Positions 8,969 through 62,079 of a DNA stretch of 64,000 bases are shown here, piece after piece. The stretch covers positions 5,022,001 to 5,086,000 of the forward strand of contig OZ059895.1 in assembly GCA_964057225.1 (NCBI GenBank). Reading direction: 5' to 3'. Every line of letters starts with the position of its first letter. Position 1 is the first letter of the stretch. A program made the position numbers and the translations under genes. Source of the DNA: Auanema rhodensis (lineage: Eukaryota > Animalia > Nematoda). The notes beneath the pieces were generated by a model. It saw only the letters and a list, made by a program, of their open reading frames with translations, ran no database searches and had not been told where the DNA came from.

Positions 8969-9009
<41 letters not shown>

Positions 9010-14843: not shown

Positions 14844-17380
<2,537 letters not shown>

Positions 17381-17695
17381 TCCAAATGTTAGCTTTCATG
17401 ACAAAGTATTAAGTAAAACACCAAAGGATTCAGATAAGACATTTTAATACATGAATGATAAAGTTCTTTAATTACTCATAATCCCTATTCATTTTTAACT
17501 AACACTTTAGGTGCAAACAATGATGCCAACATTCCCTTCCACACCCTGATTATCAACGAGCAAAGAGAACTCCCGAATTACTACACTATCAAAGTTCGAA
17601 AAAAAATTTTTTTTTAAACGAATATAAGAATTTTTGTCTAAAAAGAAACAATCGAGTATAACCATAAACTATTTACTTTGAAATCTACAAACTAA

Positions 17696-18586
17696 TTAGA
17701 TAGCGGCATTCAATGCATCCTTATACTTCTTGACACGGGAAGCGATAGACAGGTCAACGTATCTAGAATATATTAGTTTAGTTTTAACTTATAACATAGA
17801 TATTAAATTAAGAGAAAGAAGCTTACTTATCTCCAATGGTGACAACAAGACCTCCCAGAATAGATTCCTTGACAGTGTAAGTAACAGTGAACTTCTGTCC
17901 AGGTTTAGCCATCTACAACCATGATATTCGTACAATAAATATTCAGTTCGAGCCTGTACCTTGTGAAGAGCATCATTGAGAGATTGTTCATGTCCCTTGC
18001 TCAAAGGTTCAGCAGACGTAACTTGCACAAAGAGTTCCCCACGGTGAGCTCTCATTATAGATTCAAATGAAGAAACAACACCATCAAGTTTGTTCAATCT
18101 ACCGTTCTCAGCAAGAAGTCCTGAAAAGACGGTTATAAAAGCTAATGAAAATACAATACCGAGGAAGTTGGAGGATTCTTTGGAAAGTCCAAGCTTCTGA
18201 GATACGGCGTTAATGGCATCTTTTTTCTTATAGGCTTTAAGGGTAGGATCAAGAACAAAATCCTGAAAATATAATAGTAACTTTAGAAAGAATAGTAATA
18301 ATCACCTTGAACTTCTGACTCTCTTGCAAAGCATTGCGAATGTTCTGAAGATCCTTGTCAACTTGTTCAAGCTTTTTGTTTTTGTGAGCAGCTGAGTAAA
18401 GAGCTGCAGCATATTTTCCTTCAACTCCGTGAACCTTAAATACCCAAATCGCAGTTGAACACAATTTTTAGTTTTTCAAATAAAAATAACTATTATTATT
18501 ATAGAGCATACCTGAACTGGAGCTTTCACAAGTCCCGAGCGAGCAATGGCGCTCATAGAGAGCGATCTCTTGAGGATGGTGGCCAT
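17696..18586 (-). CDS. atp-3: Mitochondrial ATP synthase OSCP subunit (ATP5PO)
   Basis: MATILKRSLSMSAIARSGLVKAPVQ|VHGVEGKYAAALYSAA, LLAENGRLNKL, ESILGGLVVTIGD|KYVDLSIASRVKKY. Confidence 0.96.
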
Positions 18587-19297
18587 TCTGAATAAAAAAT
18601 TAATTCAATAAATTTCGCTAATCGTTTTAAAGTTTCATTTCCAAGCCCATTAAGTGTCAAATCATTAAAACCTCTTTACTACTGTCGAAGCATTATTTTT
18701 GTGTAAATAATAATCTAAATATACAAAATAACAAAATACTGGAAAAATCATTGTGAAAGTTTCAATATAACGGGAGATGTATGGGCAGGATGAAATGTTG
18801 AGAATGGTTTATCGGCACATTGCCAAACTGGTCCCACCACGACTACTGCGCGTCGACTCATGTTAAAAGCGATAGGCAGTCAAACAAATTCGCACATATT
18901 CTAAACCAGAAAATCCCTGATTCCCCTTATGAATCTATAGTTTTTTCTCATTTTGAGGTTATTTGTATAGAAATTTCTTCAATAGTTTAAAGCAAGTTAA
19001 ATATTATGAGTTTCTTTCCTCAGTTTATGTGTTTTTAGTGATTAAAAGGGCTTTTTGAAATATTTAGGATATTATTTTGGAAGATAATCATACTTCTTGG
19101 TCTATAAATTTGTGTATGTTTTTATAAGCTTTTATGTTGCTTTTCTTAATTTTTCATTCTTGCTTTCACTTTTTTTGGAGAGTGTATTTACCTTGTGTTT
19201 CATCTTGTTGTGAAATATTTCGAAATTTCATTTTTGCTTTTCATTGTTTTCTGTATTTAATTATTCTTTTTCAGCCACCGCTCAACTAGGAGAAATC

Positions 19298-38603: not shown

Positions 38604-41600
38604 TTAGTTAGTAGTTTCTTGGCGGACTTCGATCTTCTCAACAGTCATGTCAGGATTCATTTTAGTTGCATCTTGAATGGCTTGACTGAGCTCCTGAAAT
38701 ACCAACATTAACTGTCTAATTACAATTATTTAAAACATACCGCATCGTAATCTATGGCAGCATCGGAGTGAATAGTAACTCGATGTTCCACGTGAGTTTC
38801 AATTATACCATCCTTTTCCGTTTTGTAAGTGATGGTTTCGATAGTTCGATTTCCGCAAGTAACAGTTTTAGATGAGACAAATTCCCCAAGAGGCTAAAAT
38901 AGATAATAAATCTCAACATTAAATGAAATTATTTACATCATTTTGGTCTCTATCTGCATTATCTTCGTAAGTAAGTGTTCTAGTATGTGTCTCCACAACA
39001 GGACCTTCCTTTGGTGTTCCTAATGGTGTTGTCTGCTCACGAATACGTTCAACAGAAACATTTTCCTAAACAAATGAATTATGTCGGTTCAAATGAAGGT
39101 TTCAAGTAAACACTTACTGGTAGACTATCATCAGGAACGACATAGTTTTGGAAAGTTTGTTTTTGAACGGTATGCTTGACTTGAGAAGTTTTGACAGTTC
39201 GACTAAAGAATATAAATTAATGTTACAGAGTGATACTAAAAAAGACAAACGTGATTTTATTTCCATGTTCATCATATTCAACTGTGACGTCATCTGGTAA
39301 TATATTAGTCTCTTGCCAACTTGAAACAGTGAGATGGCGTTGCCCGCTCTCCTAAAAGTCGTATGGTTAGATATTTCCATGAATGTAAGCGATTGGGCAG
39401 TACTAAACCAAGAAGTATCAAAGTGACTTATAGCAAGCATCGGATAGCTTCCAAGAATCTTATGCTTTTATTAGCGTTAAAAATGTGTAATAGATTCATT
39501 GCCCCTACTATAACTAGTGGGCTCTTCTCTTCACGATATTAAGCTATAATCCTAACTAGACCAGGCAGGATAAACACAGTAAATGAGCATTGGATTCAAA
39601 CACAAGAAGGCAAAATAACTAAATATACACGAAGCTCGCATAAACTAAGACTGGGCTAACAATAGCAGCAGATCTAATGATCTAATCCGTTTTAGGCTCT
39701 AGTATGGGTCAGGACATTTGATGTTAGATAAATAAACATTCTTTGCGATTTAAAAGCCATCAAAGATATGCATTCAGAATTGCGATGAGCTAATGCGAAC
39801 AGAACTAATCAGATCTAAGTCCAAGTGCAGCTTCCAAGCAGAAATATCGAATGATCGGAAAGTCGGCAGCATAGTGGACTGGATGGCGCTTGAAAACAAA
39901 CAAGGATCTTGGTAAGTACTTGGTTATAGCTGCAAACGAAGACGAAGCGACATGTTGTAGCAAGTGACATCAGCGGTTGAGCCTACTACTATTGGGTACC
40001 TCGAAGGAGACCGGAAAAGGTGCCATAGCGCGCACAGTAAAGGTGCGCTCGGCCTGTTCAACTCGTGGACTGCTGTGGTTGAGGCGCTCAGCCTCGGCCA
40101 AAGTAGTTGCAAGTGACTAAATAACGACAAATCTACTCAAAATTGGTCTCTTAAGATATTATCATGAATACAAAATATAGTTTCTATGTTGTAGTGTCTG
40201 CTCAGCGGTTTGTTGGGTAGTGATGAAACCGCTATCTGCACACAACGCACGCAAAAAGATAAATAACAGTGAAAACAAAGTGGAAAGATAGAATGAAAAC
40301 CACACCGGATCATTCGGGTTGAAGCCCGACGATGAGCCTTCTCCTTTCAAGTGATATTTGAGCTCATTCGTCTCGCGGCGAACCACTTTGGCATCGGCAA
40401 GATGAGTCGAAGGTAGAATGCCAGGATTTTTGCCCTATATATGAAACCCGCAATAGAAAGTAATGTGTCGACAAAACAGATTCAGAATATTAAAAATAAT
40501 ATCATATTCGCAACATTCCGAAAAAAGAATACCAACATGCTTTCAATAAACAACTTATAAACGTTCTCATGAAGTAGATTAGTTATAATCATGAACAGTT
40601 ATTTGAAAAAAATTAACGTACCTCTGGTTCAGGACAAATGGTAACCATCTTTTGTTCATCTTCACTGGAAGAAGAATCACTTGAATCATTCTCTTTAACT
40701 CCTTTGTCCTTTTTGCCCTTAGTCTGAAAATATAGAATATAATATTAGAATTCCAGTAAATTTAACAGTTAATCATATTCGCTGATGAGTACTAGAATAC
40801 AACATATTGTTGGTATCACATCAATACTTCACGTACGTTTTTTCTGAAGTTCTCTGCTAGATGCAAGAGAGAAAACAAACATAATTCTATAGAACACTCA
40901 AAACTATAAGATAGACTAATTCTTGTCAGCTCGCACCACAATTTTTGCTTCTCGAGAAAAACGTGAAGTATTCATGATAATATTAAACATCAAAAATAGA
41001 ACTTTGTACTCATCAGCGACGCACAGTTTCTACTAAACTTCGCTCATATCATTGTTTTCACAAGCGTGCATATGGACTAAACAAAAACAACAAAGAAGGT
41101 GCTGTAGCTAAAATTTTGCAAAGAAGCGGAAGCTATAAACATGACAATCACAGCTATACAAGGAACTTCGTAGATGCCAGAAGATAAACATCAAATTGTG
41201 CAAGCATCGAAATGATAAACTTCTAAGTAGGCAACTGATCAAAACGATACAAAGTTTTGAAAGGTTAGGATCTTGAACAAATATTATAGTATGAAAGAAC
41301 AAAACATTGAACGTAAGAAACAGAACGATACAACATCCAGGTTAGAGCTACTTTGGAACCCAGGTGAAACTGTGATATTAACAGAAAAGAAGGAGAAAAT
41401 GAACTAATCACCTTAAAGCCCAAGCGGCTTAAAAAAGATCGGCCAGTGGGTGCCATTGGTGGTGGAGTAGCAGTGAATATAAGCCCTCCGTCATCTTCAG
41501 AAACAGCTCCTAACCCCGCCCCTGACAAACAAAAAACGGGCTCAAGTTGGATCTCCACCCTTCTCTCAACTCTGACTTCGATCCATTGTTGACCATCAAT

Positions 41601-44600
41601 TGTAGTACCTTCCGAATGAAAACTGTGATGTGAGACACGATTTCCGCATTCAGCCACAACTTTTTCAGAAGAAACATTTGAAACCTTCAGATCTTCAGAA
41701 CAACCATTTTTATCTCGAAAACATACATCGTTCCGAGCAATATTGATTGATCGAGAAATAGGAAAATTTTCCAAGTCCCGATGTGGCGCAAAATCATCTA
41801 AAGGTCCATCATATTTGTCAGACACTGGATAGGCTGCAAGTTCGTTAGTCTTAACTCCTGGCTTCAAGAATCCGAATCTCTTGCTTGAAGATTCACGAGT
41901 CTTACTGGTAGTCTTTTCAGGAGTAGATTCGGTTTCGTCAGGAACAATACGTGCAATGAGTCTAACTTCAGACTTCTCTTCGGTATCAGCAGAAGTAGAA
42001 GGTCCGGATTTCAGGTGTAAGATGGCCTTTTTCTTGCTGTCGGATGGAGCAGCAGCTGGCTTACTCTTTAGCCAAGACTGACCATGATGGTAGACATTGG
42101 TATGGTCTTTGAGTGGAGTAGAGTCCAAGTCACATTCCCTGTTAGTCTCTTCAAGAGGTCCGTCATAAGATGTTGAAGCAAATCCGTAAGATTCGGGTTG
42201 GACATGCTCTTTTTCGACAACGTCTTCATCACCGTCATGGCGAATTTGGGTAATGAATCGGAAGCGACGTTCCTCTGTTTCAGAGCTTGACACAGGAGAT
42301 TCAACAGTTTTCTTGGGACTATATGCAACTTGTGGAACGTTCTCGAGTGGAAGGTTTTCCAAGTCACGGTGTGGCTCAACATCATCTAAAGGTCCATCAT
42401 ATTTGTCAGACACTGGATAGGCTGCAAGTTCGTTAGTCTTAGTCTTGCGAGCTCCTGGCTTCAAGAATCCGAATCTCTTGCTTGAAGATTCACGAGTCTT
42501 ACTGGTAGTCTTTTCAGGAGTAGATTCGGTTTCGTCAGGAACAATACGTGCAATGAGTCTAACTTCAGACTTCTCTTCGGTATCAGCAGAAGTAGAAGGT
42601 CCGGATTTCAGGTGTAAGATGGCCTTTTTCTTGCTGTCGGATGGAGCAGCAGCTGGCTTACTCTTTAGCCAAGACTGACCATGATGGTAGACATTGGTAT
42701 GGTCTTTGAGTGGAGTAGAGTCCAAGTCACATTCCCTGTTAGTCTCTTCAAGAGGTCCGTCATAAGATGTTGAAGCAAATCCGTAAGATTCGGGTTGGAC
42801 ATGCTCTTTTTCGACAACGTCTTCATCACCGTCATGGCGAATTCGGGTAATGAATCGGAAGCGACGTTCCTCTGTTTCAGAGCTTGACACAGGAGATTCA
42901 ACAGTTTTCTTGGGACTATATGCAACTTGTGGAACGTTCTCGAGTGGAAGGTTTTCCAAGTCACGGTGTGGCTCAACATCATCTAAAGGTCCATCATATT
43001 TGTCAGACACTGGATAGGCTGCAAGTTCGTTAGTCTTAGTCTTGCGAGCTCCTGGCTTCAAGAATCCGAATCTCTTACTCGAAGATTCACGAGTCTTACT
43101 GGTAGTCTTTTCAGGAGTAGATTCGGTTTCGTCAGGAACAATACGTGCAATGAGTCTAACTTCAGACTTCTCTTCGGTATCAGCAGAAGTAGAAGGTCCG
43201 GATTTCAGGTGTAAGATGGCCTTTTTCTTGCTGTCGGATGGAGCAGCAGCTGGCTTACTCTTTAGCCAAGACTGACCATGATGGTAGACATTGGTATGGT
43301 CTTTGAGTGGAGTAGAGTCCAAGTCACATTCCCTGTTAGTCTCTTCAAGAGGTCCGTCATAAGATGTTGAAGCAAATCCGTAAGATTCGGGTTGGACATG
43401 CTCTTTTTCGACAACGTCTTCATCACCGTCATGGCGAATTCGGGTAATGAATCGGAAGCGACGTTCCTCTGTTTCAGAGCTTGACACAGGAGATTCAACA
43501 GTTTTCTTGGGACTATATGCAACTTGTGGAACGTTCTCGAGTGGAAGGTTTTCCAAGTCACGGTGTGGCTCAACATCATCTAAAGGTCCATCATATTTGT
43601 CAGACACTGGATAGGCTGCAAGTTCGTTAGTCTTAGTCTTGCGAGCTCCTGGCTTCAAGAATCCGAATCTCTTGCTTGAAGATTCACGAGTCTTACTGGT
43701 AGTCTTTTCAGGAGTAGATTCGGTTTCGTCAGGAACAATACGTGCAATGAGTCTAACTTCAGACTTCTCTTCGGTATCAGCAGAAGTAGAAGGTCCGGAT
43801 TTCAGGTGTAAGATGGCCTTTTTCTTGCTGTCGGATGGAGCAGCAGCTGGCTTACTCTTTAGCCAAGACTGACCATGATGGTAGACATTGGTATGGTCTT
43901 TGAGTGGAGTAGAGTCCAAGTCACATTTCCTGTTAGTCTCTTCAAGAGGTCCGTCATAAGATGTTGAAGCAAATCCGTAAGATTCGGGTTGGACATGCTC
44001 TTTTTCGACAACGTCTTCATCACCGTCATGGCGAATTCGGGTAATGAATCGGAAGCGACGTTCCTCTGTTTCAGAGCTTGACACAGGAGATTCAACAGTT
44101 TTCTTGGGACTATATGCAACTTGTGGAACGTTCTCGAGTGGAAGGTTTTCCAAGTCACGGTGTGGCTCAACATCATCTAAAGGTCCATCATATTTGTCAG
44201 ACACTGGATAGGCTGCAAGTTCGTTAGTCTTAGTCTTGCGAGCTCCTGGCTTCAAGAATCCGAATCTCTTGCTTGAAGATTCACGAGTCTTACTGGTAGT
44301 CTTTTCAGGAGTAGATTCGGTTTCATCAGGAACAATACGTGCAATGAGTCTAACTTCAGACTTCTCTTCGGTGTCAGCAGAAGTAGAAGGTCCGGATTTC
44401 AGGTGTAAGATGGCCTTTTTCTTGCTGTCGGATGGAGCAGCAGCTGGCTTACTCTTTAGCCAAGACTGACCATGATGGTAGACATTGGTATGGTCTTTGA
44501 GTGGAGTAGAGTCCAAGTCACATTCCCTGTTAGTCTCTTCAAGAGGTCCGTCATAAGATGTTGAAGCAAATCCGTAAGATTCGGGTTGGACATGCTCTTT

Positions 44601-47600
44601 TTCGACAACGTCTTCATCACCGTCATGGCGAATTCGGGTAATGAATCGGAAGCGACGTTCCTCTGTTTCAGAGCTTGACACAGGAGATTCAACAGTTTTC
44701 TTGGGACTATATGCAACTTGTGGAACGTTCTCGAGTGGAAGGTTTTCCAAGTCACGGTGTGGCTCAACATCATCTAAAGGTCCATCATATTTGTCAGACA
44801 CTGGATAGGCTGCAAGTTCGTTAGTCTTAGTCTTGCGAACTCCTGGCTTCAAGAATCCGAATCTCTTGCTTGAAGATTCACGAGTCTTACTGGTAGTCTT
44901 TTCAGGAGTAGATTCGGTTTCGTCAGGAACAATACGTGCAATGAGTCTAACTTCAGACTTCTCTTCGGTATCAGCAGAAGTAGAAGGTCCGGATTTCAGG
45001 TGTAAGATGGCCTTTTTCTTGCTGTCGGATGGAGCAGCAGCTGGCTTACTCTTTAGCCAAGACTGACCATGATGGTAGACATTGGTATGGTCTTTGAGTG
45101 GAGTAGAGTCCAAGTCACATTCCCTGTTAGTCTCTTCAAGAGGTCCGTCATAAGATGTTGAAGCAAATCCGTAAGATTCGGGTTGGACATGCTCTTTTTC
45201 GACAACGTCTTCATCACCGTCATGGCGAATTCGGGTAATGAATCGGAAGCGACGTTCCTCTGTTTCAGAGCTTGACACAGGAGATTCAACAGTTTTCTTG
45301 GGACTATATGCAACTTGTGGAACGTTCTCGAGTGGAAGGTTTTCCAAGTCACGGTGTGGCTCAACATCATCTAAAGGTCCATCATATTTGTCAGACACTG
45401 GATAGGCTGCAAGTTCGTTAGTCTTAGTCTTGCGAGCTCCTGGCTTCAAGAATCCGAATCTCTTGCTTGAAGATTCACGAGTCTTACTGGTAGTCTTTTC
45501 AGGAGTAGATTCGGTTTCGTCAGGAACAATACGTGCAATGAGTCTAACTTCAGACTTCTCTTCGGTATCAGCAGAAGTAGAAGGTCCGGATTTCAGGTGT
45601 AAGATGGCCTTTTTCTTGCTGTCGGATGGAGCAGCAGCTGGCTTACTCTTTAGCCAAGACTGACCATGATGGTAGACATTGGTATGGTCTTTGAGTGGAG
45701 TAGAGTCCAAGTCACATTCCCTGTTAGTCTCTTCAAGAGGTCCGTCATAAGATGTTGAAGCAAATCCGTAAGATTCGGGTTGGACATGCTCTTTTTCGAC
45801 AACGTCTTCATCACCGTCATGGCGAATTCGGGTAATGAATCGGAAGCGACGTTCCTCTGTTTCAGAGCTTGACACAGGAGATTCAACAGTTTTCTTGGGA
45901 CTATATGCAACTTGTGGAACGTTCTCGAGTGGAAGGTTCTCCAAGTCACGGTGTGGCTCAACATCATCTAAAGGTCCATCATATTTGTCAGACACTGGAT
46001 AGGCTGCAAGTTCGTTAGTCTTAGTCTTGCGAACTCCTGGCTTCAAGAATCCGAATCTCTTGCTTGAAGATTCACGAGTCTTACTGGTAGTCTTTTCAGG
46101 AGTAGATTCGGTTTCGTCAGGAACAATACGTGCAATGAGTCTAACTTCAGACTTCTCTTCGGTATCAGCAGAAGTAGAAGGTCCGGATTTCAGGTGTAAG
46201 ATGGCCTTTTTCTTGCTGTCGGATGGAGCAGCAGCTGGCTTACTCTTTAGCCAAGACTGACCATGATGGTAGACATTGGTATGGTCTTTGAGTGGAGTAG
46301 AGTCCAAGTCACATTCCCTGTTAGTCTCTTCAAGAGGTCCGTCATAAGATGTTGAAGCAAATCCGTAAGATTCGGGTTGGACATGCTCTTTTTCGACAAC
46401 GTCTTCATCACCGTCATGGCGAATTCGGGTAATGAATCGGAAGCGACGTTCCTCTGTTTCAGAGCTTGACACAGGAGATTCAACAGTTTTCTTGGGACTA
46501 TATGCAACTTGTGGAACGTTCTCGAGTGGAAGGTTTTCCAAGTCACGGTGTGGCTCAACATCATCTAAAGGTCCATCGTATTTGTCAGACACTGGATAGG
46601 CTGCAAGTTCGTTAGTCTTAGTCTTGCGAACTCCTGGCTTCAAGAATCCGAATCTCTTGCTTGAAGATTCACGAGTCTTACTGGTAGTCTTTTCAGGAGT
46701 AGATTCGGTTTCGTCAGGAACAATACGTGCAATGAGTCTAACTTCAGACTTCTCTTCGGTGTCAGCAGAAGTAGAAGGTCCGGATTTCAGGTGTAAGATG
46801 GCCTTTTTCTTGCTGTCGGATGGAGCAGCAGCTGGCTTACTCTTTAGCCAAGACTGACCATGATGGTAGACATTGGTATGGTCTTTGAGTGGAGTAGAGT
46901 CCAAGTCACATTCCCTGTTAGTCTCTTCAAGAGGTCCGTCATAAGATGTTGAAGCAAATCCGTAAGATTCGGGTTGGACATGCTCTTTTTCGACAACGTC
47001 TTCATCACCGTCATGGCGAATTCGGGTAATGAATCGGAAGCGACGTTCCTCTGTTTCAGAGCTTGACACAGGAGATTCAACAGTTTTCTTGGGACTATAT
47101 GCAACTTGTGGAACGTTCTCGAGTGGAAGGTTCTCCAAGTCACGGTGTGGCTCAACATCATCTAAAGGTCCATCATATTTGTCAGACACTGGATAGGCTG
47201 CAAGTTCGTTAGTCTTAGTCTTGCGAACTCCTGGCTTCAAGAATCCGAATCTCTTGCTTGAAGATTCACGAGTCTTACTGGTAGTCTTTTCAGGAGTAGA
47301 TTCGGTTTCGTCAGGAACAATACGTGCAATGAGTCTAACTTCAGACTTCTCTTCGGTATCAGCAGAAGTAGAAGGTCCGGATTTCAGGTGTAAGATGGCC
47401 TTTTTCTTGCTGTCGGATGGAGCAGCAGCTGGCTTACTCTTTAGCCAAGACTGACCATGATGGTAGACATTGGTATGGTCTTTGAGTGGAGTAGAGTCCA
47501 AGTCACATTCCCTGTTAGTCTCTTCAAGAGGTCCGTCATAAGATGTTGAAGCAAATCCGTAAGATTCGGGTTGGACATGCTCTTTTTCGACAACGTCTTC

Positions 47601-50600
47601 ATCACCGTCATGGCGAATTCGGGTAATGAATCGGAAGCGACGTTCCTCTGTTTCAGAGCTTGACACAGGAGATTCAACAGTTTTCTTGGGACTATATGCA
47701 ACTTGTGGAACGTTCTCGAGTGGAAGGTTTTCCAAGTCACGGTGTGGCTCAACATCATCTAAAGGTCCATCGTATTTGTCAGACACTGGATAGGCTGCAA
47801 GTTCGTTAGTCTTAGTCTTGCGAACTCCTGGCTTCAAGAATCCGAATCTCTTGCTTGAAGATTCACGAGTCTTACTGGTAGTCTTTTCAGGAGTAGATTC
47901 GGTTTCGTCAGGAACAATACGTGCAATGAGTCTAACTTCAGACTTCTCTTCGGTGTCAGCAGAAGTAGAAGGTCCGGATTTCAGGTGTAAGATGGCCTTT
48001 TTCTTGCTGTCGGATGGAGCAGCAGCTGGCTTACTCTTTAGCCAAGACTGACCATGATGGTAGACATTGGTATGGTCTTTGAGTGGAGTAGAGTCCAAGT
48101 CACATTCCCTGTTAGTCTCTTCAAGAGGTCCGTCATAAGATGTTGAAGCAAATCCGTAAGATTCGGGTTGGACATGCTCTTTTTCGACAACGTCTTCATC
48201 ACCGTCATGGCGAATTCGGGTAATGAATCGGAAGCGACGTTCCTCTGTTTCAGAGCTTGACACAGGAGATTCAACAGTTTTCTTGGGACTATATGCAACT
48301 TGTGGAACGTTCTCGAGTGGAAGGTTTTCCAAGTCACGGTGTGGCTCAACATCATCTAAAGGTCCATCATATTTGTCAGACACTGGATAGGCTGCAAGTT
48401 CGTTAGTCTTAGTCTTGCGAGCTCCTGGCTTCAAGAATCCGAATCTCTTGCTTGAAGATTCACGAGTCTTACTGGTAGTCTTTTCAGGAGTAGATTCGGT
48501 TTCGTCAGGAACAATACGTGCAATGAGTCTAACTTCAGACTTCTCTTCGGTATCAGCAGAAGTAGAAGGTCCGGATTTCAGGTGTAAGATGGCCTTTTTC
48601 TTGCTGTCGGATGGAGCAGCAGCTGGCTTACTCTTTAGCCAAGACTGACCATGATGGTAGACATTGGTATGGTCTTTGAGTGGAGTAGAGTCCAAGTCAC
48701 ATTCCCTGTTAGTCTCTTCAAGAGGTCCGTCATAAGATGTTGAAGCAAATCCGTAAGATTCGGGTTGGACATGCTCTTTTTCGACAACGTCTTCATCACC
48801 GTCATGGCGAATTCGGGTAATGAATCGGAAGCGACGTTCCTCTGTTTCAGAGCTTGACACAGGAGATTCAACAGTTTTCTTGGGACTATATGCAACTTGT
48901 GGAACGTTCTCGAGTGGAAGGTTCTCCAAGTCACGGTGTGGCTCAACATCATCTAAAGGTCCATCATATTTGTCAGACACTGGATAGGCTGCAAGTTCGT
49001 TAGTCTTAGTCTTGCGAACTCCTGGCTTCAAGAATCCGAATCTCTTGCTTGAAGATTCACGAGTCTTACTGGTAGTCTTTTCAGGAGTAGATTCGGTTTC
49101 GTCAGGAACAATACGTGCAATGAGTCTAACTTCAGACTTCTCTTCGGTATCAGCAGAAGTAGAAGGTCCGGATTTCAGGTGTAAGATGGCCTTTTTCTTG
49201 CTGTCGGATGGAGCAGCAGCTGGCTTACTCTTTAGCCAAGACTGACCATGATGGTAGACATTGGTATGGTCTTTGAGTGGAGTAGAGTCCAAGTCACATT
49301 CCCTGTTAGTCTCTTCAAGAGGTCCGTCATAAGATGTTGAAGCAAATCCGTAAGATTCGGGTTGGACATGCTCTTTTTCGACAACGTCTTCATCACCGTC
49401 ATGGCGAATTCGGGTAATGAATCGGAAGCGACGTTCCTCTGTTTCAGAGCTTACCACAGGAGATTCAACAGTTTTCTTGGGACTATATGCAACTTGTGGA
49501 ACGTTCTCGAGTGGAAGGTTTTCCAAGTCACGGTGTGGCTCAACATCATCTAAAGGTCCATCATATTTGTCAGACACTGGATAGGCTGCAAGTTCGTTAG
49601 TCTTAGTCTTGCGAGCTCCTGGCTTCAAGAATCCGAATCTCTTGCTTGAAGATTCACGAGTCTTACTGGTAGTCTTTTCAGGAGTAGATTCGGTTTCGTC
49701 AGGAACAATACGTGCAATGAGTCTAACTTCAGACTTCTCTTCGGTGTCAGCAGAAGTAGAAGGTCCGGATTTCAGGTGTAAGATGGCCTTTTTCTTGCTG
49801 TCGGATGGAGCAGCAGCTGGCTTACTCTTTAGCCAAGACTGACCATGATGGTAGACATTGGTATGGTCTTTGAGTGGAGTAGAGTCCAAGTCACATTCCC
49901 TGTTAGTCTCTTCAAGAGGTCCGTCATAAGATGTTGAAGCAAATCCGTAAGATTCGGGTTGGACATGCTCTTTTTCGACAACGTCTTCATCACCGTCATG
50001 GCGAATTCGGGTAATGAATCGGAAGCGACGTTCCTCTGTTTCAGAGCTTGACACAGGAGATTCAACAGTTTTCTTGGGACTATATGCAACTTGTGGAACG
50101 TTCTCGAGTGGAAGGTTTTCCAAGTCACGGTGTGGCTCAACATCATCTAAAGGTCCATCGTATTTGTCAGACACTGGATAGGCTGCAAGTTCGTTAGTCT
50201 TAGTCTTGCGAACTCCTGGCTTCAAGAATCCGAATCTCTTGCTTGAAGATTCACGAGTCTTACTGGTAGTCTTTTCAGGAGTAGATTCGGTTTCGTCAGG
50301 AACAATACGTGCAATGAGTCTAACTTCAGACTTCTCTTCGGTGTCAGCAGAAGTAGAAGGTCCGGATTTCAGGTGTAAGATGGCCTTTTTCTTGCTGTCG
50401 GATGGAGCAGCAGCTGGCTTACTCTTTAGCCAAGACTGACCATGATGGTAGACATTGGTATGGTCTTTGAGTGGAGTAGAGTCCAAGTCACATTCCCTGT
50501 TAGTCTCTTCAAGAGGTCCGTCATAAGATGTTGAAGCAAATCCGTAAGATTCGGGTTGGACATGCTCTTTTTCGACAACGTCTTCATCACCGTCATGGCG

Positions 50601-53600
50601 AATTCGGGTAATGAATCGGAAGCGACGTTCCTCTGTTTCAGAGCTTGACACAGGAGATTCAACAGTTTTCTTGGGACTATATGCAACTTGTGGAACGTTC
50701 TCGAGTGGAAGGTTTTCCAAGTCACGGTGTGGCTCAACATCATCTAAAGGTCCATCATATTTGTCAGACACTGGATAGGCTGCAAGTTCGTTAGTCTTAG
50801 TCTTGCGAACTCCTGGCTTCAAGAATCCGAATCTCTTGCTTGAAGATTCACGAGTCTTACTGGTAGTCTTTTCAGGAGTAGATTCGGTTTCGTCAGGAAC
50901 AATACGTGCAATGAGTCTAACTTCAGACTTCTCTTCGGTATCAGCAGAAGTAGAAGGTCCGGATTTCAGGTGTAAGATGGCCTTTTTCTTGCTGTCGGAT
51001 GGAGCAGCAGCTGGCTTACTCTTTAGCCAAGACTGACCATGATGGTAGACATTGGTATGGTCTTTGAGTGGAGTAGAGTCCAAGTCACATTCCCTGTTAG
51101 TCTCTTCAAGAGGTCCGTCATAAGATGTTGAAGCAAATCCGTAAGATTCGGGTTGGACATGCTCTTTTTCGACAACGTCTTCATCACCGTCATGGCGAAT
51201 TCGGGTAATGAATCGGAAGCGACGTTCCTCTGTTTCAGAGCTTACCACAGGAGATTCAACAGTTTTCTTGGGACTATATGCAACTTGTGGAACGTTCTCG
51301 AGTGGAAGGTTTTCCAAGTCACGGTGTGGCTCAACATCATCTAAAGGTCCATCATATTTGTCAGACACTGGATAGGCTGCAAGTTCGTTAGTCTTAGTCT
51401 TGCGAGCTCCTGGCTTCAAGAATCCGAATCTCTTGCTTGAAGATTCACGAGTCTTACTGGTAGTCTTTTCAGGAGTAGATTCGGTTTCGTCAGGAACAAT
51501 ACGTGCAATGAGTCTAACTTCAGACTTCTCTTCGGTATCAGCAGAAGTAGAAGGTCCGGATTTCAGGTGTAAGATGGCCTTTTTCTTGCTGTCGGATGGA
51601 GCAGCAGCTGGCTTACTCTTTAGCCAAGACTGACCATGATGGTAGACATTGGTATGGTCTTTGAGTGGAGTAGAGTCCAAGTCACATTCCCTGTTAGTCT
51701 CTTCAAGAGGTCCGTCATAAGATGTTGAAGCAAATCCGTAAGATTCGGGTTGGACATGCTCTTTTTCGACAACGTCTTCATCACCGTCATGGCGAATTCG
51801 GGTAATGAATCGGAAGCGACGTTCCTCTGTTTCAGAGCTTACCACAGGAGATTCAACAGTTTTCTTGGGACTATATGCAACTTGTGGAACGTTCTCGAGT
51901 GGAAGGTTTTCCAAGTCACGGTGTGGCTCAACATCATCTAAAGGTCCATCATATTTGTCAGACACTGGATAGGCTGCAAGTTCGTTAGTCTTAGTCTTGC
52001 GAGCTCCTGGCTTCAAGAATCCGAATCTCTTGCTTGAAGATTCACGAGTCTTACTGGTAGTCTTTTCAGGAGTAGATTCGGTTTCGTCAGGAACAATACG
52101 TGCAATGAGTCTAACTTCAGACTTCTCTTCGGTGTCAGCAGAAGTAGAAGGTCCGGATTTCAGGTGTAAGATGGCCTTTTTCTTGCTGTCGGATGGAGCA
52201 GCAGCTGGCTTACTCTTTAGCCAAGACTGACCATGATGGTAGACATTGGTATGGTCTTTGAGTGGAGTAGAGTCCAAGTCACATTCCCTGTTAGTCTCTT
52301 CAAGAGGTCCGTCATAAGATGTTGAAGCAAATCCGTAAGATTCGGGTTGGACATGCTCTTTTTCGACAACGTCTTCATCACCGTCATGGCGAATTCGGGT
52401 AATGAATCGGAAGCGACGTTCCTCTGTTTCAGAGCTTACCACAGGAGATTCAACAGTTTTCTTGGGACTATATGCAACTTGTGGAACGTTCTCGAGTGGA
52501 AGGTTTTCCAAGTCACGGTGTGGCTCAACATCATCTAAAGGTCCATCATATTTGTCAGACACTGGATAGGCTGCAAGTTCGTTAGTCTTAGTCTTGCGAG
52601 CTCCTGGCTTCAAGAATCCGAATCTCTTGCTTGAAGATTCACGAGTCTTACTGGTAGTCTTTTCAGGAGTAGATTCGGTTTCGTCAGGAACAATACGTGC
52701 AATGAGTCTAACTTCAGACTTCTCTTCGGTGTCAGCAGAAGTAGAAGGTCCGGATTTCAGGTGTAAGATGGCCTTTTTCTTGCTGTCGGATGGAGCAGCA
52801 GCTGGCTTACTCTTTAGCCAAGACTGACCATGATGGTAGACATTGGTATGGTCTTTGAGTGGAGTAGAGTCCAAGTCACATTCCCTGTTAGTCTCTTCAA
52901 GAGGTCCGTCATAAGATGTTGAAGCAAATCCGTAAGATTCGGGTTGGACATGCTCTTTTTCGACAACGTCTTCATCACCGTCATGGCGAATTCGGGTAAT
53001 GAATCGGAAGCGACGTTCCTCTGTTTCAGAGCTTGACACAGGAGATTCAACAGTTTTCTTGGGACTATATGCAACTTGTGGAACGTTCTCGAGTGGAAGG
53101 TTCTCCAAGTCACGGTGTGGCTCAACATCATCTAAAGGTCCATCGTATTTGTCAGACACTGGATAGGCTGCAAGTTCGTTAGTCTTAGTCTTGCGAACTC
53201 CTGGCTTCAAGAATCCGAATCTCTTGCTTGAAGATTCACGAGTCTTACTGGTAGTCTTTTCAGGAGTAGATTCGGTTTCGTCAGGAACAATACGTGCAAT
53301 GAGTCTAACTTCAGACTTCTCTTCGGTATCAGCAGAAGTAGAAGGTCCGGATTTCAGGTGTAAGATGGCCTTTTTCTTGCTGTCGGATGGAGCAGCAGCT
53401 GGCTTACTCTTTAGCCAAGACTGACCATGATGGTAGACATTGGTATGGTCTTTGAGTGGAGTAGAGTCCAAGTCACATTCCCTGTTAGTCTCTTCAAGAG
53501 GTCCGTCATAAGATGTTGAAGCAAATCCGTAAGATTCGGGTTGGACATGCTCTTTTTCGACAACGTCTTCATCACCGTCATGGCGAATTCGGGTAATGAA

Positions 53601-56600
53601 TCGGAAGCGACGTTCCTCTGTTTCAGAGCTTGACACAGGAGATTCAACAGTTTTCTTGGGACTATATGCAACTTGTGGGACGTTCTCGAGTGGAAGGTTT
53701 TCCAAGTCACGGTGTGGCTCAACATCATCTAAAGGTCCATCGTATTTGTCAGACACTGGATAGGCTGCAAGTTCGTTAGTCTTAGTCTTGCGAACTCCTG
53801 GCTTCAAGAATCCGAATCTCTTGCTTGAAGATTCACGAGTCTTACTGGTAGTCTTTTCAGGAGTAGATTCGGTTTCGTCAGGAACAATACGTGCAATGAG
53901 TCTAACTTCAGACTTCTCTTCGGTATCAGCAGAAGTAGAAGGTCCGGATTTCAGGTGTAAGATGGCCTTTTTCTTGCTGTCGGATGGAGCAGCAGCTGGC
54001 TTACTCTTTAGCCAAGACTGACCATGATGGTAGACATTGGTATGGTCTTTGAGTGGAGTAGAGTCCAAGTCACATTCCCTGTTAGTCTCTTCAAGAGGTC
54101 CGTCATAAGATGTTGAAGCAAATCCGTAAGATTCGGGTTGGACATGCTCTTTTTCGACAACGTCTTCATCACCGTCATGGCGAATTCGGGTAATGAATCG
54201 GAAGCGACGTTCCTCTGTTTCAGAGCTTGACACAGGAGATTCAACAGTTTTCTTGGGACTATATGCAACTTGTGGGACGTTCTCGAGTGGAAGGTTTTCC
54301 AAGTCACGGTGTGGCTCAACATCATCTAAAGGTCCATCGTATTTGTCAGACACTGGATAGGCTGCAAGTTCGTTAGTCTTAGTCTTGCGAACTCCTGGCT
54401 TCAAGAATCCGAATCTCTTGCTTGAAGATTCACGAGTCTTACTGGTAGTCTTTTCAGGAGTAGATTCGGTTTCGTCAGGAACAATACGTGCAATGAGTCG
54501 AACTTCAGACTTCTCTTCGGTATCAGCAGAAGTAGAAGGTCCGGATTTCAGGTGTAAGATGGCCTTTTTCTTGCTGTCGGATGGAGCAGCAGCTGGCTTA
54601 CTCTTTAGCCAAGACTGACCATGATGGTAGACATTGGTATGGTCTTTGAGTGGAGTAGAGTCCAAGTCACATTCCCTGTTAGTCTCTTCAAGAGGTCCGT
54701 CATAAGATGTTGAAGCAAATCCGTAAGATTCGGGTTGGACATGCTCTTTTTCGACAACGTCTTCATCACCGTCATGGCGAATTCGGGTAATGAATCGGAA
54801 GCGACGTTCCTCTGTTTCAGAGCATGACACAGGAGATTCAACAGTTTTCTTGGGACTATATGCAACTTGTGGAACGTTCTCGAGTGGAAGGTTTTCCAAG
54901 TCACGGTGTGGCTCAACATCATCTAAAGGTCCATCGTATTTGTCAGACACTGGATAGGCTGCAAGTTCGTTAGTCTTAGTCTTGCGAACTCCTGGCTTCA
55001 AGAATCCGAATCTCTTGCTTGAAGATTCACGAGTCTTACTGGTAGTCTTTTCAGGAGTAGATTCGGTTTCGTCAGGAACAATACGTGCAATGAGTCTAAC
55101 TTCAGACTTCTCTTCGGTGTCAGCAGAAGTAGAAGGTCCGGATTTCAGGTGTAAGATGGCCTTTTTCTTGCTGTCGGATGGAGCAGCAGCTGGCTTACTC
55201 TTTAGCCAAGACTGACCATGATGGTAGACATTGGTATGGTCTTTGAGTGGAGTAGAGTCCAAGTCACATTCCCTGTTAGTCTCTTCAAGAGGTCCGTCAT
55301 AAGATGTTGAAGCAAATCCGTAAGATTCGGGTTGGACATGCTCTTTTTCGACAACGTCTTCATCACCGTCATGGCGAATTCGGGTAATGAATCGGAAGCG
55401 ACGTTCCTCTGTTTCAGAGCTTGACACAGGAGATTCAACAGTTTTCTTGGGACTATATGCAACTTGTGGAACGTTCTCGAGTGGAAGGTTTTCCAAGTCA
55501 CGGTGTGGCTCAACATCATCTAAAGGTCCATCGTATTTGTCAGACACTGGATAGGCTGCAAGTTCGTTAGTCTTAGTCTTGCGAACTCCTGGCTTCAAGA
55601 ATCCGAATCTCTTGCTTGAAGATTCACGAGTCTTACTGGTAGTCTTTTCAGGAGTAGATTCGGTTTCGTCAGGAACAATACGTGCAATGAGTCTAACTTC
55701 AGACTTCTCTTCGGTATCAGCAGAAGTAGAAGGTCCGGATTTCAGGTGTAAGATGGCCTTTTTCTTGCTGTCGGATGGAGCAGCAGCTGGCTTACTCTTT
55801 AGCCAAGACTGACCATGATGGTAGACATTGGTATGGTCTTTGAGTGGAGTAGAGTCCAAGTCACATTCCCTGTTAGTCTCTTCAAGAGGTCCGTCATAAG
55901 ATGTTGAAGCAAATCCGTAAGATTCGGGTTGGACATGCTCTTTTTCGACAACGTCTTCATCACCGTCATGGCGAATTCGGGTAATGAATCGGAAGCGACG
56001 TTCCTCTGTTTCAGAGCTTGACACAGGAGATTCAACAGTTTTCTTGGGACTATATGCAACTTGTGGAACGTTCTCGAGTGGAAGGTTTTCCAAGTCACGG
56101 TGTGGCTCAACATCATCTAAAGGTCCATCATATTTGTCAGACACTGGATAGGCTGCAAGTTCGTTAGTCTTAGTCTTGCGAGCTCCTGGCTTCAAGAATC
56201 CGAATCTCTTGCTTGAAGATTCACGAGTCTTACTGGTAGTCTTTTCAGGAGTAGATTCGGTTTCGTCAGGAACAATACGTGCAATGAGTCTAACTTCAGA
56301 CTTCTCTTCGGTATCAGCAGAAGTAGAAGGTCCGGATTTCAGGTGTAAGATGGCCTTTTTCTTGCTGTCGGATGGAGCAGCAGCTGGCTTACTCTTTAGC
56401 CAAGACTGACCATGATGGTAGACATTGGTATGGTCTTTGAGTGGAGTAGAGTCCAAGTCACATTCCCTGTTAGTCTCTTCAAGAGGTCCGTCATAAGATG
56501 TTGAAGCAAATCCGTAAGATTCGGGTTGGACATGCTCTTTTTCGACAACGTCTTCATCACCGTCATGGCGAATTCGGGTAATGAATCGGAAGCGACGTTC

Positions 56601-59600
56601 CTCTGTTTCAGAGCTTGACACAGGAGATTCAACAGTTTTCTTGGGACTATATGCAACTTGTGGAACGTTCTCGAGTGGAAGGTTTTCCAAGTCACGGTGT
56701 GGCTCAACATCATCTAAAGGTCCATCATATTTGTCAGACACTGGATAGGCTGCAAGTTCGTTAGTCTTAGTCTTGCGAGCTCCTGGCTTCAAGAATCCGA
56801 ATCTCTTACTCGAAGATTCACGAGTCTTACTGGTAGTCTTTTCAGGAGTAGATTCGGTTTCGTCAGGAACAATACGTGCAATGAGTCTAACTTCAGACTT
56901 CTCTTCGGTGTCAGCAGAAGTAGAAGGTCCGGATTTCAGGTGTAAGATGGCCTTTTTCTTGCTGTCGGATGGAGCAGCAGCTGGCTTACTCTTTAGCCAA
57001 GACTGACCATGATGGTAGACATTGGTATGGTCTTTGAGTGGAGTAGAGTCCAAGTCACATTCCCTGTTAGTCTCTTCAAGAGGTCCGTCATAAGATGTTG
57101 AAGCAAATCCGTAAGATTCGGGTTGGACATGCTCTTTTTCGACAACGTCTTCATCACCGTCATGGCGAATTCGGGTAATGAATCGGAAGCGACGTTCCTC
57201 TGTTTCAGAGCTTGACACAGGAGATTCAACAGTTTTCTTGGGACTATATGCAACTTGTGGAACGTTCTCGAGTGGAAGGTTCTCCAAGTCACGGTGTGGC
57301 TCAACATCATCTAAAGGTCCATCATATTTGTCAGACACTGGATAGGCTGCAAGTTCGTTAGTCTTAGTCTTGCGAGCTCCTGGCTTCAAGAATCCGAATC
57401 TCTTGCTTGAAGATTCACGAGTCTTACTGGTAGTCTTTTCAGGAGTAGATTCGGTTTCGTCAGGAACAATACGTGCAATGAGTCTAACTTCAGACTTCTC
57501 TTCGGTATCAGCAGAAGTAGAAGGTCCGGATTTCAGGTGTAAGATGGCCTTTTTCTTGCTGTCGGATGGAGCAGCAGCTGGCTTACTCTTTAGCCAAGAC
57601 TGACCATGATGGTAGACATTGGTATGGTCTTTGAGTGGAGTAGAGTCCAAGTCACATTCCCTGTTAGTCTCTTCAAGAGGTCCGTCATAAGATGTTGAAG
57701 CAAATCCGTAAGATTCGGGTTGGACATGCTCTTTTTCGACAACGTCTTCATCACCGTCATGGCGAATTCGGGTAATGAATCGGAAGCGACGTTCCTCTGT
57801 TTCAGAGCTTGACACAGGAGATTCAACAGTTTTCTTGGGACTATATGCAACTTGTGGAACGTTCTCGAGTGGAAGGTTTTCCAAGTCACGGTGTGGCTCA
57901 ACATCATCTAAAGGTCCATCGTATTTGTCAGACACTGGATAGGCTGCAAGTTCGTTAGTCTTAGTCTTGCGAACTCCTGGCTTCAAGAATCCGAATCTCT
58001 TGCTTGAAGATTCACGAGTCTTACTGGTAGTCTTTTCAGGAGTAGATTCGGTTTCGTCAGGAACAATACGTGCAATGAGTCTAACTTCAGACTTCTCTTC
58101 GGTATCAGCAGAAGTAGAAGGTCCGGATTTCAGGTGTAAGATGGCCTTTTTCTTGCTGTCGGATGGAGCAGCAGCTGGCTTACTCTTTAGCCAAGACTGA
58201 CCATGATGGTAGACATTGGTATGGTCTTTGAGTGGAGTAGAGTCCAAGTCACATTCCCTGTTAGTCTCTTCAAGAGGTCCGTCATAAGATGTTGAAGCAA
58301 ATCCGTAAGATTCGGGTTGGACATGCTCTTTTTCGACAACGTCTTCATCACCGTCATGGCGAATTCGGGTAATGAATCGGAAGCGACGTTCCTCTGTTTC
58401 AGAGCTTGACACAGGAGATTCAACAGTTTTCTTGGGACTATATGCAACTTGTGGAACGTTCTCGAGTGGAAGGTTTTCCAAGTCACGGTGTGGCTCAACA
58501 TCATCTAAAGGTCCATCATATTTGTCAGACACTGGATAGGCTGCAAGTTCGTTAGTCTTAGTCTTGCGAGCTCCTGGCTTCAAGAATCCGAATCTCTTAC
58601 TCGAAGATTCACGAGTCTTACTGGTAGTCTTTTCAGGAGTAGATTCGGTTTCGTCAGGAACAATACGTGCAATGAGTCTAACTTCAGACTTCTCTTCGGT
58701 GTCAGCAGAAGTAGAAGGTCCGGATTTCAGGTGTAAGATGGCCTTTTTCTTGCTGTCGGATGGAGCAGCAGCTGGCTTACTCTTTAGCCAAGACTGACCA
58801 TGATGGTAGACATTGGTATGGTCTTTGAGTGGAGTAGAGTCCAAGTCACATTCCCTGTTAGTCTCTTCAAGAGGTCCGTCATAAGATGTTGAAGCAAATC
58901 CGTAAGATTCGGGTTGGACATGCTCTTTTTCGACAACGTCTTCATCACCGTCATGGCGAATTCGGGTAATGAATCGGAAGCGACGTTCCTCTGTTTCAGA
59001 GCTTGACACAGGAGATTCAACAGTTTTCTTGGGACTATATGCAACTTGTGGAACGTTCTCGAGTGGAAGGTTCTCCAAGTCACGGTGTGGCTCAACATCA
59101 TCTAAAGGTCCATCATATTTGTCAGACACTGGATAGGCTGCAAGTTCGTTAGTCTTAGTCTTGCGAACTCCTGGCTTCAAGAATCCGAATCTCTTGCTTG
59201 AAGATTCACGAGTCTTACTGGTAGTCTTTTCAGGAGTAGATTCGGTTTCGTCAGGAACAATACGTGCAATGAGTCTAACTTCAGACTTCTCTTCGGTATC
59301 AGCAGAAGTAGAAGGTCCGGATTTCAGGTGTAAGATGGCCTTTTTCTTGCTGTCGGATGGAGCAGCAGCTGGCTTACTCTTTAGCCAAGACTGACCATGA
59401 TGGTAGACATTGGTATGGTCTTTGAGTGGAGTAGAGTCCAAGTCACATTCCCTGTTAGTCTCTTCAAGAGGTCCGTCATAAGATGTTGAAGCAAATCCGT
59501 AAGATTCGGGTTGGACATGCTCTTTTTCGACAACGTCTTCATCACCGTCATGGCGAATTCGGGTAATGAATCGGAAGCGACGTTCCTCTGTTTCAGAGCT

Positions 59601-62079
59601 TGACACAGGAGATTCAACAGTTTTCTTGGGACTATATGCAACTTGTGGAGCGTTCTCGAGTGGAAGGTTCTCCAAGTCACGGTGTGGCTCAACATCATCT
59701 AAAGGTCCATCGTATTTGTCAGACACTGGATACTTTTTGGTTTTCCGAGATGTAAAAAGGGAACGAATGTTATGTGTTTCTCTTGTTCTTTCATTATGGT
59801 GGGAAGAAATATCATTACTATGAGAGATAGATGCTGAAGGATCAGTCCAATAAATAGTGGAGTATTCGTTGATATTTTTGCTCTGGATGTCTTGCGATTT
59901 TTCCAATCGTTGAAGAGGAATATGTGTGTATGAAGGAAAGTTATAATATTTTACATCTGGCGGTGAGTCATCACTATATCCTGGGTGTATTATCCTACTG
60001 ATTCTAAATTGTTCTCTCTGTCCAGAGTGTGTTACATCAACAAAGTAACGAATGGGATGAGGTTCAAGATCTCCGATAAGGTCAAGTTGATTCGGCCGGT
60101 TGGATCCATTTCGGGGAGAATAGGGTAATATTGGAACGGTTGGCGATTGTAAAGAGTGTGAGTAGTACCCATGATGATAAAGTTGAACAGATTCGGCTAT
60201 TGGTAACTGTGGCAAGTCTTCTTCGAATTTTGTAGGGGAGAGAGGAATGAGGGGATCAGCTGGCTCATGAAATGACAGTAAGCGTACTGGTTGTCCGTTA
60301 TCGCGCCCAAACAAATTGCGTCTCACATTCGGCTGCGTTTTTTTTACTCGCAGAACAACTCTATTTGGAGAAATCGCTCCAGTTGATTGAGGCGAGCGAA
60401 GCGATGTTTCAGATATATAATAAGCAGCCGACGTGGGAGATTCAATAGGCGTGTAGACAAGCTCGTCGTCATCAGAATTTAGCTCGTCACGTACCTTATC
60501 TTTTGTTGCTGCCTCCGGAGTTGGTGATACTTCGTACGAGGTAACTGGTGAAGATAAAGGCTATAATGAATTTCATTTCTTCAAGTTATGTTCTTATGAA
60601 CTTACATTTTGTGAGCCTAATTCTCTATCGTTATACCCAAGAACATCGACAGTTTCATTGTTTTTGGCTACTGCAAAAAAAATATATATAGAACAAGAGT
60701 CGATGAGCAAACCATTGTCGCATGATTGGGTAAGTCTAGCACTACTAGATCGTTGTACTGTAGCAGAAGCTGGTCGGTCAAACATATGAGATGCCATTTT
60801 AGTTTGGAACTGTGTTCTTCCATTATATCTAAACCGAGCGGATCCCCAACGGAATAGACCAGCTTTTCGTTTGTCTTCTGGTTGAATTAATCTGAAAAGA
60901 ATAATGAAAAAATATACAACTTCAGTTAAACCTAAAGAATGTGTGATGCTCAACTCCACATTTATAAATACGCTTAGCATAAGTGTAATCAGCCACTTTA
61001 TATACCAATGTAGTTGACTTCTTATCGAGCTTAACTTATTATATAAAATGTATACTTAATTAATAATACTACCTCTCCCGGATTAAGTTTGATAGCAAAT
61101 GTATTTTTACGATAGCTTATCTTGTTAATATTTTGCCATAAAAAGCGGTGAAGACGTATAGTTTCTTTATAAATATTAATACCAGTAGCACATATGCCAA
61201 TTGAAACTGGGTTACTGCTTTTATCCTAGTAAAATTAAAATAAAACAAAATATAATAATAACGTACTTTAGCTTCATAAACGAAAACTCCGTACATACTT
61301 AGCTGTTTGCAGGTATCTAGATATTTCATCTCAGCTTCAGCTGGGGTAAGTCCTCTTAAAAAATATTTTTTATTTGATTTGTAATAGGCACTCACTTGTG
61401 TTCCTTATGTGCATCTTTGATTTTATCACTCAAATCATTATTTTTAGGTTCTAATACAGCTGATCTCAAGTATTGTTCATATTCAACAGAAGAATTGGCA
61501 TCGCCGAATTCAGCTTGCGCTACGAGAGAACCCAGAAGAACATGTGTTGGAATAGTAGCTGGTAACCTTAAAACTTTTGTTAGTATGCATGTCTTCATAT
61601 AAAGTTTTACCTCCCGCTATAAATATCGTTCCTAAGTTGCAAGAATAGATTGCTTCTAGCATGATCATCATTTAAAGTGGAAGGAGTGGTCGGATAGAAT
61701 TTGACCTCAAATGAGAACACCCATGGTAGGCCTAAAACACAACCATTCTTTAGTTAATAGATATTCTAATCACCTTTAAGTTGTCGAAGTATCTTTTTAT
61801 CTGTGTACAGCCAATGTCGAACTCCTTCGGTATCATGATAAGCAAGAGAGAAGTAATCATGTTCTTCTATAGAAACTTCTGTGCTTACCATAGTGAAAAG
61901 AGTATCTCCTTTCGAACCACGCTGAAAGTAAAAAATTAGATTTTTTTTTTCAGTCCTCTTACTGGAAGTAGGAAATCTTTAACAGTGCCATCAAGCATAT
62001 GAACTTTTGCTGCTTGCATTTTTGGGTCTTGAATTTTAGGCTGTGCGGCCTCTCCTCCGGGGTCTCCGTCCTTACCCAT
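38604..62079 (-). CDS. frm-1: Protein 4.1/Coracle family FERM protein with FA domain, giant repeat exon and 4.1 C-terminal domain
   Basis: ATG 62079. FERM exons (VHMLDGT, FSFEVKFYP, GSLVAQAEFGD, GLTPAEAEMKYL, SMYGV, CGVEHHTFFRL), FA region FRWGSARFRYNGRTQ, and giant exon 60560-41412. C-terminal exons end ETHVEHRVTIHSDAAIDYDA|ELSQAIQDATKMNPDMTVEKIEVRQETTN* (4.1 CTD); stop 38604-38606. Confidence 0.92.
41760..59731 (-). repeat. Coding tandem array: 30 x 597 bp (199 aa) plus a degenerate partial unit
   Basis: Shadow ORFs recur at a 597-bp period from 42068 to 59381 (29 intervals). Units differ by a few substitutions; the last has an in-frame 9-bp deletion. Confidence 0.98.

Follow-up and report, generated by a model that had tools for sequence, protein, structure and literature searches.

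In Caenorhabditis elegans, the protein 4.1 homologue FRM-1 is annotated in both giant and short forms. The frm-1 gene, on chromosome I, encodes proteins of 4,530, 4,541, and 4,648 amino acids (aa) (NP_493600.2, NP_001021866.1, and NP_493601.2, respectively) and one of 634 aa (NP_493599.2). Its FERM and FA regions are followed by one repeat-rich giant exon, a basic and Ser-rich exon, and the C-terminal domain (CTD). The giant exon is 11,688 nucleotides (nt) long (6972..18659 of the fetched locus L007) and ends in ...ARLGFK/GT (a slash marks a splice boundary). It is a cassette: the preceding exon ends in ...CAA TTT GAG/GTTAGT, and the short form skips the giant exon as a whole, joining ...QRQFE to RDKSNKK. 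The uninterrupted frame of NP_493599.2 is found in three assembled mRNA contigs. In C. elegans embryos, membrane-cortex integrity has recently been linked to FRM-1 (PMC13733786); in our literature searches, no paper dealt with the giant FRM-1 isoform or its role. Here, we describe the orthologous gene on the minus strand of a 64,000-nt stretch of the Auanema rhodensis genome (contig OZ059895.1), which we call the window and whose positions serve as coordinates throughout. This gene has the same order of parts as frm-1 and, as we propose, giant and short products too. Its giant exon is 1.6 times longer than that of C. elegans, its repeats are more than 99% identical, and, unlike C. elegans, which is without a conserved inner donor, it contains a 5′ splice site shortly after its start.

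A similar arrangement exists in strongylid nematodes, where it is known from database models and one assembled mRNA contig; no published study of it was found in the literature searches. An inner donor, AAG/GT, lies there 23 codons into the giant exon. The short forms keep the small segment preceding it and join the homologue of the window exon 40723..40622, and the giant models read through into VGNGLPSDDDELVYTP. The strongylid donor reads GTGGGT rather than GTACGT, and the segment measures 69 nt rather than 66. Outside the protein 4.1 family, the 270-kDa form of vertebrate ankyrin-G is made from a splice site inside a giant exon, and this would amount to the same device. Ankyrin-G (Ank3 exon 37) is likewise a membrane-skeleton adaptor with a very long, largely unstructured insert that comes from one giant exon and is included in some cells only (PMC12713133). 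It belongs to an unrelated family, its insert is not built as an array of near-identical units of 199 aa, and neuron specificity has been shown for ankyrin-G. For coracle, the protein 4.1 homologue of Drosophila, a long form of 1,698 aa is known besides shorter cDNA isoforms, the differences lying in the stretch that links the FERM and C-terminal domains (PMC2132682); the insert is far smaller and lacks a tandem repeat array.

On comparative grounds, we consider it probable that the central exon of the A. rhodensis gene is read in two ways, according to which of two donors is used. The features concerned are listed here, each donor being scored by its matches to CAG/GTAAGT out of nine positions.

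60606..60670, minus strand: small exon VAKNNETVDVLGYNDRELGSQN, with donor AAT/GTAAGT (7/9), ending in phase 0 (homology and sequence read)
60495..60560, minus strand: first 66 nt of the giant exon, 22 codons PLSSPVTSYEVSPTPEAATKDK, a mini-exon if the inner donor is used (sequence and homologues)
60489..60494, minus strand: putative inner 5′ splice site GTACGT (GAT AAG/GTACGT), phase 0, coding for Val-Arg in the giant form (sequence and conservation)
41412..60494, minus strand: part specific to the giant isoform, 19,083 nt, made of a unique head with DDDELVYTPIESPTSAAYY, the repeats, and a unique tail ...RSFLSRLGFK (sequence)
41406..41411, minus strand: distal donor GTGATT (GGC TTT AAG/GTGATT), phase 0, 6/9 (sequence)
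40724..41411, minus strand: intron from the distal donor to exon 40723, 688 nt (sequence)
40622..40723, minus strand: shared downstream exon TKGKKDKGVKENDSSDSSSSEDEQKMVTICPEPE, 34 codons, phase 0-0 (sequence and homology)

If the inner donor, AAG/GTACGT at 60495, is used, the first 66 nt of the giant exon would be kept and joined in frame to exon 40723..40622, giving a short FERM-FA-CTD protein of roughly 650-700 aa. These 66 nt would then act as a mini-exon with a weak acceptor at one end and a good donor at the other. If the inner donor is bypassed, another 19,083 nt would be read before the exon ends at the weaker donor, 41412, and is joined to the same downstream exon. The product would be about 7,000 aa long, with about 30 repeats of 199 aa between the FERM/FA and the C-terminal domains. 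Both choices would be made in this species. As the inner donor is closer to the consensus than the distal one (7/9 vs. 6/9), its repression or bypass would likely be the regulated step.

An earlier, sequence-only reading of the window had described this in-frame donor 22 codons into the giant exon, and its position is confirmed: the last exon base is 60495 and the GT lies at 60494-60493, exactly 66 nt into the exon. The open frame needed for the predicted read-through to a distal phase-0 donor at 41412 is also there, as the giant exon (60560..41412, minus strand; 19,149 nt) has no stop in any of its 6,383 codons. The junction proposed for the short form is correct in phase but was off by one base at each end of the downstream exon, which had been placed at about 40724-40621 and in fact spans 40723..40622 (ttttcag/ACT AAG GGC ... 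CCA GAG/GTACGT). Because the inner donor, the distal donor, and exon 40723 are all in phase 0, either junction is in frame. Use of the inner donor would take out 60494..40724, a stretch of 19,771 nt with 19,083 nt of coding sequence.

The exons framing the switch have counterparts in other nematodes. The small exon 60606..60670 is homologous to ...ADNELGSRE in strongylids and to ...SELEQRQFE in C. elegans. The distal donor corresponds to C. elegans GGATTCAAG/GTGAGT and to TTCAAG/GTGAAT in Auanema sp. JU1783, the nearest species in the database, and exon 40723 corresponds to SSAQKPKKQKKGKKETDSSDSSSSSEDEKNQIQVIPVE in Haemonchus and RDKSNKKDKKKRKKGENETSGETSDSEHDEK in C. elegans. The acceptor of the giant exon, at 60561, reads ...cattatag/CCT TTA TCT, the exon starting at 60560. 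This acceptor (60561-60575) is weak for a nematode, and the shared downstream exon has a consensus one, tattttcag (40724-40732). In C. elegans, unlike in the window, the acceptor of the giant exon also matches the consensus (L007 around 6965).

The check suggested along with the sequence-only reading, conservation of the internal donor in related species, speaks in favor of the switch. We fetched the orthologous loci of JU1783, Trichostrongylus colubriformis, and Ancylostoma ceylanicum, as well as C. elegans frm-1, and compared the homologous position at the DNA level. AAG/GT occurs at the exact homologous codon boundary in the window and in the first three of these loci:

Window, 60560..60495, minus strand: 66 nt before the GT, AAG/GTACGT
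Auanema sp. JU1783, L003 16876..16941: 66 nt before the GT, AAG/GTACGT
T. colubriformis, L008: 69 nt before the GT, AAG/GTGGGT
A. ceylanicum, L009: 69 nt before the GT, AAG/GTGGGT

All nine donor bases are identical between JU1783 and the window, whereas the neighboring codons differ (AAA GAT vs. AAA AGC before the donor, GAC GAG vs. AGA TGG after it). In T. colubriformis and A. ceylanicum, the inner site lies inside a continuing open frame. In the protein alignment, the window, three strongylids, and Mesorhabditis all have the Lys-Val pair encoded at the site, although the surrounding residues vary. The Val is not kept at the equivalent place in Caenorhabditis (C. nigoni has Ile). Its absence in worms that skip the whole exon fits the idea that elsewhere it is kept for splicing.

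Short products split at this very position are found in relatives. Two short isoforms of Haemonchus contortus, A0A7I5E5T8 (625 aa) and A0A7I4XVB4 (709 aa), read ...EKRKLDGK/SSAQKPKKQKKG..., exactly at the site; the junction of the Haemonchus short forms is also given as ...EKRKLDGK/SSAQKPKKQKKGKKETDSSDSS..., and the joined part is the homologue of exon 40723..40622. Contig L002 (run SRR22936840) contains an uninterrupted frame of 677 codons from FERM to CTD and can therefore only be a spliced mRNA. Its junction, AAG/AGT, is at the same place and again connects the mini segment to the homologue of exon 40723..40622. In the gene models of JU1783, CAI4224607/8, the inner donor is spliced to the homologue of exon 40434..40306, as the counterpart of exon 40723 is hidden by a gap in the assembly. 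Among the short 4.1 forms of Ascaris suum, F1KU02 carries a homologue of the mini-exon, 32 residues long, and F1KUU5 lacks it. Judged by this homology, the mini-exon segment is optional in Ascaris too.

The opposite choice, reading through, has its own signature. The motif DDDELVYTPIESPTSAAYY (DDELVYTPxESPxSAAYY) starts eight codons (24 nt) past the GT and is common to the giant forms of strongylids and Mesorhabditis; a weaker version, SSAAYYMSERSS, occurs in Caenorhabditis. As 24 nt leave no room for an intron, this motif is made only by reading through the inner donor. For the same reason, we ruled out a short intron just after the GT, with which the variable would really have been the choice of acceptor. 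The alignment of the T. colubriformis protein P0032 covers query residues 1-470 and thus spans the inner site. By these alignments, the read-through is conserved coding sequence.

Its domains and alignments identify the gene as an FRM-1 (protein 4.1) orthologue of an Auanema-type rhabditid nematode. Exons were scanned with Pfam and searched at the protein level piece by piece, and the borders within the first of the two following regions are approximate.

60700..62079, minus strand: 5′ coding exons for FERM_N, FERM_M, FERM_C, and FA, with an ATG near 62079 (Pfam, three-frame read, and FRM-1 alignment)
38604..39065, minus strand: exons for the C-terminal domain (4_1_CTD) and the stop codon (Pfam)

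On single exon pieces, FERM_N and FERM_M were recognized with E values of 1.2e-08 and 4.6e-05, and the FERM_C region was assigned by alignment with FRM-1 proteins rather than by a separate profile scan. The FA motif (2.5e-05) scored 24.6 bits, under the cut-off of 30.6 bits, as the scan covered no more than an exon piece; its segment RFRYNGRTQFQTKMA aligns with all FRM-1 proteins compared. The 4_1_CTD profile matched two exon pieces (38607-38893; 6.7e-05 and 1.8e-04) over positions 31-106 of 107. The SAB domain (PF04382) gave no match on the exon pieces scanned with Pfam. It is likewise missing from the nematode relatives and is carried by vertebrate 4.1 proteins, so that its absence sets nematode FRM-1 apart from vertebrate 4.1 and is no argument against orthology with FRM-1.

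A search of 1.84 billion database representatives with the first 479 residues of the giant exon retrieved 102 representatives at E ≤ 0.001, of which the named ones are nematode FRM-1, carrying the family name "FERM domain (protein4.1-ezrin-radixin-moesin) family". Giant relatives show 8 to 57 matched stretches each. Besides the C. elegans proteins, giant FRM-1 measures 6,411 aa in C. nigoni, 5,020 aa in C. bovis, 5,419 aa in Mesorhabditis, and 7,691 aa in Bursaphelenchus. The window has the giant FRM-1 layout, with a single giant exon bearing YDGPL-type repeats between FA and the basic/Ser-rich exon and ending in ...RLGFK. The C-terminal order of the relatives (...SFLARLGFK, a basic and Ser-rich segment, and the CTD) is identical in the window. 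Since the same repeats and the same order occur across nematode FRM-1, giant protein 4.1 is a conserved and already annotated nematode feature.

Several observations weigh against the two-donor switch, and each has to be set beside the explanation that it favors. The Haemonchus and JU1783 isoforms are database gene models. A word search with residues 1-40 of the giant exon (candidates of 550-1,750 aa) found nothing, one with residues 1-315 (candidates of 173-551 aa) found only a JU1783 repeat fragment, and neither turned up a transcript-derived protein of this species across the site. The strength of the inner donor, taken alone, is at chance level. Among the 848 GT dinucleotides of the giant exon, no other has at least 7/9 matches, a score shared by the two flanking donors (60606 and 40622). 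Yet at least one such site arises in 51% of codon shuffles of the approximately 1.8 kb of non-redundant giant-exon sequence, which is not significant, and after these shuffles we dropped donor strength as an argument for a real site. The shuffles and the word searches would suit a GTACGT that is a mere Val-Arg codon pair resembling a donor, in an exon that is always read through so that only giant FRM-1 is made. We regard this as very unlikely, given that AAG/GT lies at the same codon boundary in four genera whose flanking codons have diverged, that orthologous mRNAs are spliced at the site, and that about 1.3% of shuffles yield a site of this strength that also has phase 0 and lies no farther than 30 codons into the exon. 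The weight given to the inner donor comes from its being conserved and not from its being strong. A further point concerns the JU1783 assembly, which by its sequence lends no support to a giant reading at its locus. There (L003:16942-17585, CALQYR020007239.1), the mini-exon and AAG/GTACGT are intact, and the frame closes 15 codons past the donor. The stop is followed by 514 nt without similarity to the window, which lead into the final 45 giant-exon codons and the donor at their end. Such an intron-like continuation would be expected if the inner donor were constitutive and the 19-kb frame, as a relic or an intronic repeat of recent expansion, never entered mature mRNA here. This we hold to be slightly more improbable even than the fortuitous Val-Arg pair. 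The frame is open over 6,383 codons, the 597-nt repeat unit is a multiple of three, and head and tail are homologous to the giant FRM-1 of many nematodes, including the curated C. elegans isoforms of 4,530-4,648 aa. The JU1783 locus itself is full of gaps. As one third of the scaffold is N and repeat units lie on stray contigs (e.g., the 696-nt L001), the giant exon of JU1783 has likely collapsed in the assembly, real loss being the alternative.

The remaining objection is that the sequence offers a second in-frame route to the short form. With exon 60670..60606 ending in phase 0, a direct junction from 60606 to 40723, which leaves out the giant exon altogether, would also preserve the frame, and this route is used by C. 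elegans and by one Ascaris form. The giant exon might then be a cassette as in C. elegans, the short form arising mainly from 60606 to 40723 and the inner GT being used little or never. The donor at 60606 (AAT/GTAAGT, 7/9) would allow it, the giant-exon acceptor (cattatag) is weak compared with the consensus ttttcag at 40723, and both C. elegans NP_493599.2, which lacks exon 6972..18659, and A. suum F1KUU5, which is without the segment, provide precedents. Against it, Auanema and strongylids have kept both the 66-69-nt segment and AAG/GT, short mRNAs and models of strongylids and Ascaris include the segment, and the models of the nearest relative, JU1783, use the inner donor. We therefore think it unlikely as the main source of the short form, and the cassette and inner-donor routes are not mutually exclusive. 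Since the skip of the whole exon is also in phase 0, the inner donor should not be called "the" switch. To this extent, the original proposal that a choice between two donors toggles a short and an approximately 7,000-aa 4.1 needs qualification: the short isoforms spliced there in relatives and the conserved read-through support it, but the inner donor is not the sole in-frame route to the short form.

Giant and short FRM-1 are already annotated in C. elegans, and the A. rhodensis gene is a local case of this known choice. Across the species compared, Auanema and strongylids appear to take the same decision through the inner donor, and Caenorhabditis by skipping the whole exon. More tentatively, and with somewhat less than even confidence, we suggest that the inner donor is an old gatekeeper common to Auanema, Mesorhabditis, and strongylids (perhaps reflected in the optional segment of Ascaris), that it has to be actively silenced for the giant form to be made, and that it was lost in Caenorhabditis, where the decision moved to skipping of the whole exon. 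If this were true, the gene would offer a documented change in the type of splice switch within one orthologous gene, and a single GT would be a handle for selective removal of the short or the giant form. Under the two-donor switch, one nucleotide pair has been located whose use or bypass decides between an FRM-1 of about 700 residues and one of about 7,000, and a conserved inner donor would permit isoform-specific genetics in the worms that carry it. The comparison also provides a correct gene model for a locus poorly handled by gene finders (the sister-species model is truncated, with repeats on stray contigs). Biologically, the case is still one of ordinary alternative splicing of a known gene.

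The array that fills most of the giant exon consists of 30 units of 597 nt (199 aa), from 59720 to about 41810, which are more than 99% identical. Each differs from the consensus at 0-5 positions, except the last one, which carries a 9-nt deletion. Tandem Repeats Finder missed the array, the period of which is above the limit of that program. As the window units are near-identical while the JU1783 unit is only 76% identical to them at the protein level, the sequences suggest that the array was homogenized or expanded after the split of the two Auanema species.

We also looked for RNA structures that might bear on donor choice. Folds of 121 nt around the inner donor in four species gave z scores of -1.9, +1.6, +0.6, and -2.0, with no shared structure hiding the site. 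A candidate long-range pairing across the exon (16 nt, 88% complementary, 60313-60328 vs. 41628-41643) was at chance level and was rejected. Separately, the 688-nt intron contains two nested inverted repeats (40779-40834 vs. 40961-41019; 14 nt at 100% and 16 nt at 94%) ending 56 nt upstream of the 40723 acceptor, which could be a hairpin of about 240 nt or a small inverted-repeat element.

Two further exons lie between the shared downstream exon and the CTD exons:

40306..40434, minus strand: exon GKNPGILPSTHLADAKVVRRETNELKYHLKGEGSSSGFNPNDP, 43 codons, phase 0, optional in relatives (sequence and relatives' isoforms)
40000..40116, minus strand: exon SLATTLAEAERLNHSSPRVEQAERTFTVRAMAPFPVSFE, 39 codons, phase 0-0, a cassette in relatives (sequence and relatives' isoforms)

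The homologue of the former is absent from the 625-aa form of Haemonchus and the 634-aa form of C. elegans and present in the 709-aa form. That of the latter varies between isoforms of C. bovis (P0002/P0103) and of C. elegans (P0007/P0106). Given that these exons are optional in relatives, the window gene probably yields more than two products. Just downstream of the 4.1 gene is a lipocalin-like gene (36223-36753, minus strand), in the same order as in JU1783 (L003 23408-24624, Lipocalin_10). Beyond it, collagen-like Gly-X-Y reading frames occupy 33021-35820.

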